Part shown: positions 53,339 to 58,056 of the stretch, piece after piece
Position numbering within the stretch: the stretch's first letter is position 1
Layout: each line of letters begins with the position of its first letter
NCBI RefSeq assembly: GCF_041956535.1
Contig: NW_027192202.1
Coordinates: 257,723-321,722, forward strand
Direction of reading: 5' to 3'
Origin: Calcarisporiella thermophila CBS 279.70
Lineage: Eukaryota; Fungi; Calcarisporiellomycota
DNA: 64,000 nucleotides
Notes under the pieces: generated by a model
The model's database searches: none
The model's input: only the letters and a program-made list of their open reading frames with translations
What the model was told of the DNA's origin: nothing
Position numbers and translations under genes: made by a program

Positions 53339-54340
53339 ATGATGAAGTTGTTCCTTGGAAAGCGTGCTCAACATGATACAGGAAAAGCAGCCATCCTCAG
53401 GATCAAAGAAACTATTGTAATGCTCGAGAAGCGCGAGAAGCTGATTCGGGAGAGAGCAGAGAACGAGCACAAAAAGGCCAAGAGTCTAGCTACAAAAAGC
53501 AGAAAAGGTATATGCTTTGATAATTATCCACCTCCTGAAGGGTAGTGCTTGAGTGTATCAGTGGATGATTTTCCTTTGCAAGAGCGTGCATAAGGAGGGG
53601 AGTCGGGATATCATCTTTTACGGGATTGCTTACAGTACTCCTTTTTTTTTATAAGCTGCTCTAAGTGCGCTCCAAAGGCGTAACTGCTTCCTCGATCAAA
53701 TAGAGAGGATCGGCCTGCAATATGTCAATCTGGAGAAACAAATCGTGGCCCTCGAGTCTGCCATGGCCAATATCGAGACGCTGAATGCAATGCGTTCTGG
53801 TGCAGAATCTCTCCGAAACATATATGGAAAAATGTAAGCACTTCCCAAAAGTTTCTCCATCTTGGAGCATCTTAGCACTATGTTTTTTATATTGCCACAT
53901 CAACTAGGAACGTTGAAAAAGTCGATGAACTAATGGATGATATTCGGGACCAAGTGGATATGAATGAGGAGATATCAATGGCAACCACCCAGTCGTTATG
54001 GAGCACACAGGATGATGTCTGCATCTCCCCATTATTCGCTCTTGCTATTTTCATTTGACGCCTATCTTTTAATCCCGTTCAGGAGGAGTTGCTCAAGGAG
54101 CTCGACGATCTACTGCAGGAAGAGTTGAATGAAAACATGCTCAGCACGCCTCAGCCTGACACCCTCCATTCGAGGGTGTCTGAGCAAGAGCCCAAGTGTA
54201 AGTGCTCATTTTGCGAATTTCCCATTCTCCTACGCTCAAGCCCCATCCCCAACCATCTTTGAACCATAGGGAACCAAGAAGACACGGAAGAGAAAAAAAC
54301 ATTGCGCGTCTTGCAATCGACCATGGAAGAGCCGCTGTGA
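53339..54340 (+). CDS. SNF7: ESCRT-III Snf7/Vps32/CHMP4-family protein, divergent (5 exons)
   Basis: MKLFLG, AILRIKETIVMLEKREK, AALSALQRR, LEKQIVALESAMANIETLNAMRSGA, VEKVDELMDDIRDQ, EELLKELDDL, C-terminal LRVLQSTM. Confidence 0.88.
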
Positions 54341-54741
54341 CGGTTAAGCCGCTCTTTACCTAGGCAAACCGCAAACATTGATGATGCTATTAGTTAAGAT
54401 GGAATAAACTAACCCCATTGAGGCCCAAAGCTGTTTTCAGAGAAGAATGCATACTCTCTAGGGAAAGATTGGTGTAGCTCTTATGGAAATCTGATTTTAT
54501 ATATTGACTTCACTGATGCTTTACATAGGAGTGGGAGAAGGAAGAAATTTAAATTGGTAAAGACAAAAAAAAAAATAGTAAAAAGTACTATGCCTAAATA
54601 AAGGGGTAGAAAAAAATATATTAAAAAAGAGAGGGAAAAAAAAAGATTTAGCACTATGGAAACCAATTCCCAGTGAGAGCAAAGAAAGCAAGACCGAAAA
54701 GATTAGGAAGCAAAAGTGAAATCCTCTATCTCTACTCTACC

Positions 54742-56040
54742 CTAAGGCGGCCATTTATTGATGTTGTCCTGCGGCTTCTTGGACGCACGCAGGACGGCCT
54801 TTACGGACTCTAGCAGACGCCGCCTGGCGGCACTGCTGAGACGAAACAAGATGGCGAAACCGTCGGCGTCAGCCCGTCCCGACGCCGTCTGAAACGGCGG
54901 CTGTCGGCCCGTCCAAATCCAAGATAAGATTGAGAAAGTCAGGGTCAAAGTGGCCAAAATCGATGGATTCGAGCTGATGAGACTGACTTTCTTCATCTGG
55001 AGTAAGTTGAGGGGTCGTGTGGGTGGGTAGGGCGAGTGACGCTTCGATTTCCCGTAAAGGCTCCTCTGGTTCGGTGGACTCCGCAGCGGGGAGGTTGGCA
55101 CAACCCCTGCCGATCGAGCGGCTCCATTGCCGCTCTGTTTTTCATTACCAGAGCGGGACAATGGCGCAGTCGAGACATCACGGCGGAGGGTGAAGCGCCT
55201 TCTTTCAGCGAACGCAGCTGGTTCGCGAAAACCACCGAGGAGGATATTAGCCATCTCGTCGAGTTTGAGTTGAGAGCGGATTTCGGAGAGCTGGGAGGAA
55301 AGCGCATCGATGCGGGCGGAGAGTGTGGCATTCTCCGTCTCCACCAGCTTTAGGCGCTTGCTCAGATGCTCGTTCTCCTCTTTGAGACTTGAGTTCGCGG
55401 TCTCTAGCTCCGTTATATAACGGCGTTTCTTTTCACGGGACTCTTGGGCAGCCGCGCGATTACGGAGAACTCTGCAAGTATAGTAGGCAAAAAAAAAGTG
55501 AGCAATCCAGTTATACCATTGTCATCTCTAAATTTAGCTGGAATTTATGTTGGAAACTTCAGAACAATACCTTGTCTTCATTTTCTCGTCCATGCCCTCG
55601 AGCGATATTCTCCCGCGACGATCCGAGTTTTTCTTTGGCGCAGATTTCTTTGTCTTTTGAGCAGATTTAGCGTCCGAGACAGGCGCATCTGCTGTAGTGG
55701 TGGCCTTTGTTGACGATTCGCTCTTGCCACTGTCGACATTGTTGGATACACTGGAGAGCAAATCGCTCACCATAGCGTCAATAATGGGATCACTCGGAAT
55801 CATGGCAGGCTCGAACTTAAATTCAGTCGAGAGAATACTTGAGGGACTAGGGGGCGAGGAGGAAGAGGTGGTGGAGGGCGAGAATGGAGTGGGCGGCAAG
55901 AGGTAGTGATCTGTCTCATTTGCCGACTCCGTTGCGAGCATGGAGCAGTCCTTGTTGGCTTCCCAGGAAACAGTATGGGAATTGTCCACAGTGCCATCTA
56001 CATGGGCTTGAGTGTCGGGGTTGGCACTGGACAAGGACAT
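54742..56040 (-). CDS. HAC1: HAC1/XBP1-like bZIP transcription factor (spliceosomal intron 55570-55472; candidate Ire1 intron 55217-55087)
   Basis: KTR|VLRNRAAAQESREKKRRYITELE plus leucine zipper, followed by EPAA at an Ire1-type stem-loop. Unspliced product 399 aa; spliced product 313 aa ending at 54869. Confidence 0.88.
55087..55217 (-). other. Predicted unconventional (Ire1-cleaved) intron, 131 nt
   Basis: 5' hairpin GCGAAC-CAG|CTGC-GTTCGC; 3' hairpin CTCC-CCG|CTGC-GGAG; flanking exons pair via TCGGTGG/CCACCGA. Confidence 0.78.
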
Positions 56041-56497
56041 GGTTGGGTGAGTTGTATGGGGGAGAAGGGGGAGGGGGAAGGCGAGTGAATGATATATTCG
56101 ACAACGTCCGCTCTCAATTCCCGTTTATTTAAAAGATTGATATTTCTTGGCTAAGGCTATATCTGAATTTTTCAACACTTGTTTAAATATGATTGGCTGA
56201 GCCAAATTGTTCGGGAATATTCCACTCTTTTGGACAGGGTTACTATATGAAATGGTCTGTCTGAAATGCCATAATCAAAATAAAGCATAGGCAGAGGGAG
56301 GGTTCAATTATGTACAAGTGCATCATTATACGTGGTTATAAGTTTGAGATTATTTACGTTGTCATGGCTTTCGTGACTATTGAATAGAGAAGAAACTGTA
56401 AACAGTGTTCAACATGCTGCAAGGAATATTTGGGGGGGAATGTTTATTGAGAAGTTGGCCTGGACTTTGAATACTACAAATAAGGATCGCATGTACA

Positions 56498-58056
56498 TTA
56501 AGTGCGCTCTGGCGGAGGAGTTTGGGGAGGAAGATCAGGATTGATCGGTTCAAATGCAGACGGAGGGGGAGTCTTCGTGGCAGAATCCCCGTTTTTGCCC
56601 TCCACAATAGTATTGCGGGTGCCTCCAGGGCGTTTGTTGTTGATGGTGTCAAAGATGGAAAGGGCTTGCGCAACCATTGAGCCTGCATCCGCTGCTCCCG
56701 CAGGTACTATCACCGTCGTTCCTTCTTTGGCTAAGTTACCAAAGGCATCCACGTATTTCTCCGCCACTGTGAGCGACACTGCATCAAGCCCATAGGGTCT
56801 GGTTTGGATTGCCTCGGCGATACGCTCGATTCCTTGCGCAGTAGCACGGGCTTTCGCGAGAATAGCTTCTGCCTCACCGAGAGCACGGTTGATCTGTTCC
56901 ATCTTCTGTGCTTCGGACTGGAGAATCGTCGATTGTTTGCGACCCTCCGCCACATTAATAGCAGCCTGACGAGAACCTATAAACAAGAAGTCAAGTTGAT
57001 GGGCACGAAATCACTAGGGAGAAATTAATGAATGAAAAGATACCTTCGGATTCCAAAATTTGCGCTCTTTTGCTCCGCTCCGCACTCACTTGGCTGTGCA
57101 TGCTTTCCACTACATTTGCTGGGGGATGGATGTCTCGGATTTCATACCGCAGACACCGAATCCCCCAGTCGGATGCCGCAGTATTGATCTGCTCTACGAT
57201 ATTTGCATTCAAGTACGCGCGCTCCGCTAGTGTCCGGTCCAGCGTCATCTGACCTATCTCAGCACGCATTGTTGTTTGCGCAAGCTGTGCTACCGCAAAT
57301 TCAGCGTCCTCAACTCCATAGGATGCCTTCGGATAGAGGAGGCAATAAGCGCACGGTCAACATCAAGCCTGAAAGCGAGGTTCAAAATACCTTATACGGA
57401 TCCACAACTCGATAGTAAAGGATGCCATCAATATCTAGTGTGACGTTATCTATGGAAAAATCAGAAATACAATGCAGCAGACTGAATACGAGGCTGATAC
57501 CACGAGAGGACATTTAGTTACCTTGCGTAATAGCACTTTGACTTGGGATCACCACCACTGCTTCTTTTAGACTCTGGACGTATTTGATTTTGTCAAGGAA
57601 GGGAACCAAAACGGCAAGTCCTGGATCGAGAATGCGGCTGAATCTACCCATTCGTTCCACTATCCAAGCTTCTTGCTGCGGAACAAATTTCACAATCTAA
57701 GAGGGGGGGAGGGCGTGTAGGAGGTGTGTCAGCAAATCCCGGCATTCAGTTACTAGGGTAGTATAGAGACAAAGCTAAATTCATACCGTATTTCTGGGAA
57801 GTGATCGGCGAACCCAACTAGCACCGGCATCACCGCCACCTATACTGTCGGAGGTGTATCCATTAGTGTAGTTCGTCAGAGTTCGCCGTTGGCTGTTCGC
57901 CAAAATTGGAAGACAGCGAAAAGCCTGGTGGAATAATGCACGTTAAAAACGAGTCAAAGAGAATGAGTTGTAATAATGCCAGCTTGAACTCACAGTAAAT
58001 GCAACACGCTTATGTTGCTGCCTCAGTAAATGACTCGGTAGGGTCCTCAATAACAT
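56498..58056 (-). CDS. STOML2: Stomatin-like protein 2 (SPFH/Band-7, mitochondrial; multi-exon)
   Basis: VKFVPQQEAWIVERMGRFSRIL, PSQSAITQ|DNVTL, LAQTTMRAEIG, CLRYEIRDIHPP, AERSKRAQILESEG, AEKYVDAFGNLAKEG; presequence-like N-terminus. Confidence 0.95.

Follow-up and report, generated by a model that had tools for sequence, protein, structure and literature searches.

A candidate Ire1-dependent intron and a dual-coded tail in the probable HAC1/XBP1 orthologue of the early-diverging fungus Calcarisporiella thermophila

In Saccharomyces cerevisiae the HAC1 mRNA contains an intron of 252 nt (0 mod 3), pairing of the 5′ UTR with this intron blocks translation, and the 3′ UTR carries a targeting element. 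The mRNA of animal XBP1 is built around a central exon-exon stem from which two hairpins extend as arms, and a zipper drives the intron out and brings the ends to be joined into line (PMC4687415). The unspliced XBP1u mRNA reaches the ER by way of a hydrophobic region, which emerges during a ribosomal pause some 50 residues further on; the plant bZIP60u orthologues likewise stall about 50 residues past a hydrophobic region, and in Selaginella the last two codons before the stop, Pro-Pro, cause a stall in termination and promote cytoplasmic splicing (PMC11077094). The HAC1 introns published from fungi range from 19 to 848 nt (PMC6222058). A Hac1 candidate of Rhizopus arrhizus has a non-canonical intron according to RNA-seq (PMC10946435), and the hacA genes of Aspergillus have long, conserved tails of unknown function in the unspliced frame (PMC13703316, a review of 2026). 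We found no description of a HAC1 from the Calcarisporiellomycota, the separate phylum in which the NCBI taxonomy places Calcarisporiella thermophila, in the open-access literature.

In a 64-kb window from C. thermophila (the window is the whole stretch of DNA that was analysed, 64,000 nucleotides; coordinates refer to it and, for this minus-strand gene, are written in the direction of reading) there is a bZIP gene that we regard with good confidence, judging from the sequence, as the single HAC1/XBP1 orthologue of this fungus, with positions 55217-55087 as its Ire1-dependent unconventional intron. The reading frame starts with the ATG at 56040-56038. Exon 1 (56040-55571) codes for a Ser/Thr/Pro-rich N-terminus and is followed by an ordinary spliceosomal intron of 99 nt (55570-55472; GT...AG, aag/gtattg ... 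ttgcag/a), the removal of which is needed to reproduce the annotated protein. Up to the predicted 5′ cut, exon 2 (55471-55218) encodes a basic region and a leucine zipper (Pfam bZIP_1, 2.6e-9; bZIP_2, 1.2e-8) that align with the orthologues. Joined, the two exons measure 1200 nt, stop codon included, and their 399-aa product is the very protein annotated as P0001 (VTP21DRAFT_1647), which exon 2 matched with 100% identity in a word-based protein search. This annotation represents the unspliced state of the mRNA. The gene is the only copy; among the other bZIPs of the 28-Mb genome the best matches have E values of no better than about 1e-5.

The candidate intron is bounded by two hairpins. The 5′ splice-site hairpin (55226-55208) has a 6-bp stem, GCGAAC (55226-55221) with GUUCGC (55213-55208), and the loop CAGCUGC (55220-55214); the 3′ splice-site hairpin (55093-55079) has a 4-bp stem, CUCC (55093-55090) with GGAG (55082-55079), and the loop CCGCUGC (55089-55083). 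Both loops are 7 nt long and of the CNG/CNGN type, and in both the cut is predicted after the G at loop position 3, CAG/CUGC at 55218/55217 and CCG/CUGC at 55087/55086. Direct reading bears out an earlier note on this DNA, which had named these two hairpins with the same cuts and had pointed to a 7-bp complement between the flanking exons, TCGGTGG (55238-55232) and CCACCGA (55077-55071). The 131-nt segment (2 mod 3) between the cuts begins with CUGC and finishes with CCCG, so that its ends, CU...CG, are non-spliceosomal and lack GT-AG; loops of the same kind bound the introns of the orthologues. Such hairpins are rare in the surroundings. On both strands of the window (128 kb) just eight hairpins combine a 7-nt CNGNNGN loop with at least four Watson-Crick pairs, and only three have a CNGCNGN loop, two of which are the Calcarisporiella HAC1 pair. 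Within the gene no further candidate was found, even when stems of at least 3 bp with G-U pairs were permitted.

The 211-nt region folds more stably than shuffled versions of it (z = −2.77). Partition-function calculations give base-pair probabilities of 0.91-0.95 for the 5′ stem, of 0.58-0.60 for the 3′ stem and of 0.92-0.999 for the exon helix formed by UCGGUGG (55238-55232) and CCACCGA (55077-55071), the S1-like central stem, which is also part of the minimum free energy fold and recurs as a helix in the orthologues. The intron folds on itself (MFE −50.2 kcal/mol, z = −2.47), and within this longer self-fold lies a hairpin (55164-55124) of 6 + 8 bp with an 11-nt loop that contains TAA TGA. 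The mRNA is thus predicted from its sequence to be a bifurcated structure composed of the exon-exon stem, the 5′ hairpin, a self-folding intron body and the 3′ hairpin. An Rfam scan of positions 54000-57000 at E ≤ 10 yielded chance-level matches only, and the Hac1/Xbp1 intron family RF04247 was not matched. This is as expected, since the model describes short metazoan introns (PMC11701678) and here 131 nt are inserted between the hairpins.

The word-based search with exon 2 had returned the gene's own protein as sole match; the orthologues were reached by an exhaustive HMMER search, which gave 306 homologues. The best of them are bZIP proteins of early-diverging fungi, one called HacA by its source, and the nearest have features of the tail and of the splice sites in common with the Calcarisporiella gene. 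The DNA was taken for twelve orthologues: Geosiphon, Ambispora, Diversispora, Endogone, Bifiguratus, Umbelopsis, Phycomyces, Basidiobolus, Actinomortierella, Coemansia, a Logan transcript contig and a soil-metagenome contig. All twelve have twin sites at homologous positions. The first is a 5′ hairpin with a CNG/CNNN loop (CAG/CACG in the Mucorales type) at codons for G-F/V-R-x-S/P-A-A; the second, downstream, reads UC(C/U)CNG/C(A/U)GCGG and is near-invariant across the thirteen species. Between these fixed sites both the sequence and the length of the intron vary freely, with predicted lengths of 47 nt in Basidiobolus and Actinomortierella, 53 nt in Coemansia, 107 nt in Endogone, 131 nt in Calcarisporiella, 139 nt in Bifiguratus, 152 nt in Geosiphon, 158 nt in the soil-metagenome contig, 167 nt in Ambispora, 173 nt in Diversispora, 185 nt in the Logan contig, 193 nt in Phycomyces and 221 nt in Umbelopsis. 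Two earlier statements on length have to be given up. The intron of 131 nt had been called unusually long; it lies in the middle of the range, because the orthologous introns measure 47-221 nt, and it also falls within the published fungal span. The length of 2 mod 3, which the earlier note had pointed out as common to this and the short known introns, is no rule, because the introns of Bifiguratus and Phycomyces are 1 mod 3.

The proposal that the 7-bp exon complement could grow into a longer zipper after cleavage is supported by RNAcofold. For the cleaved exon ends of Calcarisporiella a duplex of about −32 kcal/mol is predicted, in which the 7-bp stem is continued, after one U-U mismatch, by a second run of 7 bp between UUUCGCG (55230-55224) and UGCGGAG (55085-55079), an ES1-like extension. 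Before cleavage part of the former serves as the upstream strand of the 5′ hairpin stem, and the latter consists of the 3′ arm of the 3′ hairpin together with loop bases. In 12 of the 13 species the ends left by in-silico cleavage are predicted to pair with each other, with duplex energies between −21.7 and −31.6 kcal/mol and z-scores between −2.2 and −5.6. When 3′ exons were exchanged between species, the cognate one ranked first as zipper partner in eight of the thirteen and second or third in four near-identical sequences of the Glomeromycotina type, the mean energy being −23.5 with cognate and −16.5 with non-cognate partners. The register is fixed, 5′ exon position −(8+k) pairing with 3′ exon position +(3+k), and in six lineages nearly all of the 14 zipper positions are paired, with substitutions that compensate one another (A-U, G-C and C-G, for example); in Endogone, Bifiguratus, Umbelopsis, Phycomyces and Basidiobolus the extension keeps to the register seen in Calcarisporiella. 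In Actinomortierella, where a spliceosomal intron probably ends just 5′ of the hairpin, the genomic 5′ flank yields no zipper.

Removal of 55217-55087 would change the reading frame. A codon opens with G 55218 and is completed by CU once the intron is gone, so that the predicted junction reads ...GAACCAG/CUGCGGAG.... In the spliced frame the 3′ exon (55086-54869, with TGA at 54871-54869) encodes a tail of 71 residues, AESTEPEEPLREIEASL...ESIDFGHFDPDFLNLILDLDGPTAAVSDGVGTG-stop, with 16 Asp + Glu and a single Lys + Arg, and the predicted Hac1s has 313 amino acids as compared with 399 for the unspliced protein. The tails are acidic in all thirteen species, and all orthologues have in this frame the motif (D)FL..LLD.D(W/G), for example DLLDSFLDYDW, DFLLDDLLDWDG or LDDLFDWNG, with DFLNLILDLDG in Calcarisporiella; splicing is therefore predicted to exchange the C-terminus for a candidate activation domain. 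The same frame is closed within the intron by an in-frame TAA TGA, and therefore a short intron starting at the 5′ site cannot reach the acidic tail. This argument had been made in the earlier note and holds, with the correction that the two stop codons are at 55147-55142 and not at 55148-55143.

Similar loops also serve Ire1 in the degradation of mRNAs (PMC4687415), and the two hairpins could accordingly be sites at which Ire1 or another RNase cleaves the mRNA for decay or down-regulation (RIDD-like), or the intron could be an inactive relic in this species. We consider this very unlikely, since both frames 3′ of the second site are conserved across phyla, the acidic motif can be reached solely by precise removal of the intron, the exon-exon zipper, which is relevant only to ligation, is conserved and covarying, and a ligase is encoded in the genome.

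The unspliced frame has no stop in the intron; it runs on for 158 codons, into the 3′ exon, and ends with TAG at 54744-54742. The alignment shows that the unspliced-frame tails are conserved like the spliced ones, with a hydrophobic segment followed by a C-terminus of the type (W/Y)-P-P-stop. In Calcarisporiella the hydrophobic segment comprises about 16 residues, is rich in Ser and Thr and has a mean Kyte-Doolittle value of 1.9; two-frame translation shows that the stretch coding for it (54960-54913) is dual-coded, being read as ILATLTLTFSILSWIW (the hydrophobic region) in the unspliced frame and as DFGHFDPDFLNLILDL (the acidic activation-type motif) in the spliced frame. The same overlap of a hydrophobic with an acidic segment is found in Geosiphon, Ambispora, Endogone, Actinomortierella and the soil-metagenome orthologue; in the Glomeromycotina the hydrophobic segment reads LLLTFSIVFWT. 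The unspliced protein of Calcarisporiella ends with Trp-Pro-Pro-stop (ccg cct tag for Pro-Pro-stop, 54750-54742), 57 residues past the hydrophobic region; in the sequences for which the homologous segment was chosen, this distance ranges from 53 to 69 residues. Pro-Pro-stop terminates eight of the nine long orthologue tails as well as the reading of Coemansia javaensis; among the 156 proteins compared it terminates 17, including those of Coemansia spp., Basidiobolus ranarum and Allomyces arbusculus. The tail of Actinomortierella lacks it. In Mucorales, Umbelopsis and Bifiguratus the unspliced frame stops 11-20 codons into the intron and there is no long tail.

The conservation of a hydrophobic segment in the unspliced frame could also mean that regulation acts chiefly on the unspliced protein, as a bZIP that is tethered to the membrane and released by proteolysis in the style of ATF6 or plant bZIP28, with splicing being secondary. 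This we judge to be highly improbable: for an anchor the segment is short, rich in Ser and Thr and of only moderate hydrophobicity, Mucorales, Umbelopsis and Bifiguratus have dropped the entire tail yet retain the intron, and a Pro-Pro-stop at a fixed distance suits a stalling device more than an anchor (PMC11077094).

Covariation across orthologues, which the earlier note had suggested together with folding as a check on the hairpins, was assessed for both stems. Over the thirteen species 93.3% of the cells of the 5′ stem are paired, a value as high as this was reached in none of 500 shuffles, and controls slid along the alignment were 25-52% paired; these counts overstate independence, as the orthologues are of common descent and four of the rows, those of the Glomeromycotina type, hardly differ. 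The covariation of the 3′ stem over the same species does not rise clearly above that of controls. With a 3′ site that hardly varies in sequence, covariation of so short a stem is not convincing; the Glomeromycotina stems, moreover, are bulged, with two pairs and a bulged continuation. That Ire1-like loops arose by chance in an unrelated bZIP gene and were conserved by protein-coding constraint is extremely improbable, for even though the 5′ hairpin lies within the conserved codons G-F/V-R-E/G-S/P-A-A and an invariant 3′ site cannot show stem covariation, a background of about six such hairpins per 128 kb gives about 6e-4 as the estimated chance of meeting two within an exon of 730 nt, in seven of the eight pairs of the 5′ stem both bases change while pairing is kept, and the intron is free to vary in sequence and length between fixed sites. 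The proposal of a HAC1-type mRNA with an Ire1 intron in an early-diverging fungus gains strong support from the twin sites of all twelve orthologues and from the covariation of the 5′ stem, and the predicted intron adds the Calcarisporiellomycota to the lineages with an Ire1-spliced HAC1.

The genome encodes the machinery for such splicing. A single KEN/RNase domain (PF06479, E 6e-46) identifies Ire1; the ligase, kinase and CPD domains of Trl1 are adjacent on one contig in the typical three-domain form, and RtcB is encoded in addition. In Mucorales, Trl1 is a sealing-only form (PMC10946435). We envisage that the unspliced mRNA is translated and that the hydrophobic segment, together with the Pro-Pro-stop 57 residues on, would bring the mRNA, with the ribosome that is translating it, to the membrane of the ER. 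The self-fold of the intron would hold the two loops near each other, and upon ER stress Ire1 would cut both of them after the third base, a G. The freed end of the 5′ exon would then re-pair with the start of the 3′ exon, adding 7 bp to the 7-bp stem, and the resulting zipper would expel the intron and keep the exon ends together until Trl1 (RtcB also being present) ligates them at ...CCAG/CUGC.... Translation would thereby leave the 158-codon unspliced tail and enter the acidic tail of 71 residues, giving an activator of 313 amino acids.

The Calcarisporiella mRNA looks more like that of animal XBP1 than like that of yeast HAC1. With metazoan XBP1 it shares the exon-exon stem, the two hairpins with 7-nt CNG/CNGC loops and the zipper, all of them predicted here, an unspliced open reading frame that crosses the intron into a dual-coded 3′ exon, and the removal by splicing of a hydrophobic region (HR2 in XBP1u), with a candidate stall about 50-60 residues downstream of it. 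It differs in that the intron has 131 nt and a stable fold of its own instead of 26 nt, that the candidate stall is a Pro-Pro-stop at termination rather than the arrest peptide of XBP1u, and that C. thermophila has a fungal Trl1 ligase beside RtcB. S. cerevisiae HAC1 is also a fungal bZIP factor of the UPR with twin CNG/CNGN loops, a medium-to-long intron and a 3′ exon that supplies the activation domain, and ligation by Trl1 is presumed for the Calcarisporiella mRNA too. Unlike the yeast frame, the unspliced frame of Calcarisporiella passes the intron into a conserved tail, and its intron length is frame-shifting whereas that in yeast is 0 mod 3. Pairing of the yeast type between 5′ UTR and intron, with the 200 nt upstream of the ATG assumed to be the 5′ UTR, was no better than in shuffles (fraction 0.117). 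Introns of the other fungal HAC1/hacA/HXL1/cib1 genes are elements of the same kind with widely variable lengths (PMC6222058), and from the Mucorales-type orthologues (Phycomyces, Umbelopsis) Calcarisporiella is set apart by having retained the long conserved unspliced tail. SmbZIP50u of Selaginella moellendorffii resembles it in having a hydrophobic region in the unspliced frame and, about 50 residues on, a Pro-Pro-stop; it differs in coming from a plant and in having a short intron, and its stalling was shown by experiment, whereas that of the fungal tails is proposed from their sequence.

Because the fungal tails closely fit the XBP1u/bZIP60u pattern, we propose delivery of the mRNA by the nascent chain; the analogy suggests an XBP1-like co-translational delivery of HAC1 mRNA to Ire1. 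The broader proposal is a tentative one, to which we give slightly less than even confidence: Calcarisporiella, Glomeromycotina, Endogone, Basidiobolus, Coemansia and perhaps Allomyces may run HAC1 like animal XBP1 and some plant bZIP60, with a translated unspliced mRNA, a dual-coded hydrophobic segment, a ribosome held at Pro-Pro-stop and the mRNA thus carried to Ire1 at the ER. An ER-targeting tail would not be universal among early-diverging fungi, because that of Actinomortierella lacks the Pro-Pro-stop and Mucorales, Umbelopsis and Bifiguratus lack the long tail. In the open-access literature we found no description of the arrangement of a hydrophobic region and a Pro-Pro-stop in fungi.

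The analysis corrects gene models: the annotated protein of C. thermophila corresponds to the unspliced form, and the models of Ambispora and Diversispora mix both frames. As predicted from the sequences compared, introns of medium length (47-221 nt) with an XBP1-like stem and zipper appear to be the norm in early-diverging fungi. If the proposed delivery by the nascent chain is true, such targeting would be ancestral in fungi or even in opisthokonts, and the translational block in yeast and the short unspliced tails of the Mucorales would be derived. The conserved dual-coded hydrophobic/acidic stretch with a Pro-Pro-stop at a fixed distance offers a connection, open to testing, between the switches of fungi, animals and plants.

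At the start of the 3′ exon of the Calcarisporiella HAC1 orthologue (window 55057-55073, minus strand), GAGGAGCCUUUACGGGA is nearly the same, nucleotide for nucleotide, as in the Glomeromycotina (loci L007:2596-2612, L011 from Ambispora leptoticha and L014 from Diversispora eburnea). The spliced frame translates it as EEPLR(D/E), the unspliced frame as RSLYG. This near-identity is consistent with a constraint that acts either on the two reading frames together or on the RNA itself. The gene models deposited for A. leptoticha (protein P0013, from L011) and D. eburnea (P0010, from L014) are chimeric: a spurious GT-AG intron leads into the acidic, spliced frame, after which the models return to the unspliced frame and end with ...PRDWRKYPP. 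To gene finders, both frames of these orthologues evidently appear coding.

The Pro-Pro-stop terminus of the unspliced frame is also found in more distant HAC1-like bZIP proteins, namely those of Coemansia spp. (P0066, P0074, P0094), Basidiobolus ranarum (P0032) and Allomyces arbusculus (P0108); the Coemansia and Basidiobolus proteins also have a hydrophobic stretch about 60-70 residues before the end. Coemansia javaensis harbors twin CAG|CAGC hairpins with a spacing of 53 nt (L018:1335-1388). In the Mucorales-type orthologues of Umbelopsis (L015:2540-2555) and Phycomyces (L016:2559-2574) the 5′ loop is CAG|CACG, with C at loop position 6 rather than the G usually conserved there, and the 3′ loop CUG|CAGC is retained.

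The exon-exon zipper was not found on the genomic DNA of Actinomortierella wolfii. The DNA directly 5′ of its 5′ hairpin is A-rich and terminates with ...tattag (L013:2441-2465), which suggests that a spliceosomal intron ends immediately before the hairpin; this would account for the lack of a zipper in the genomic sequence.

Outside the window, the genome of C. thermophila encodes two enzymes, either of which could seal the HAC1 exons: a fungal Trl1 with all three domains, ligase, kinase and CPD (G000:C1:409230-411550), and a ligase of the RtcB type (G000:C5:257733-258905). The Trl1 of Mucorales is reportedly sealing-only (PMC10946435).

In two contigs, L009 (Logan SRR21609001) and L008 (JGI 3300012469), the orthologue is unspliced and lacks any spliceosomal intron. 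Both contigs probably derive from transcripts, in which case the unspliced mRNA would be the abundant species in those samples.
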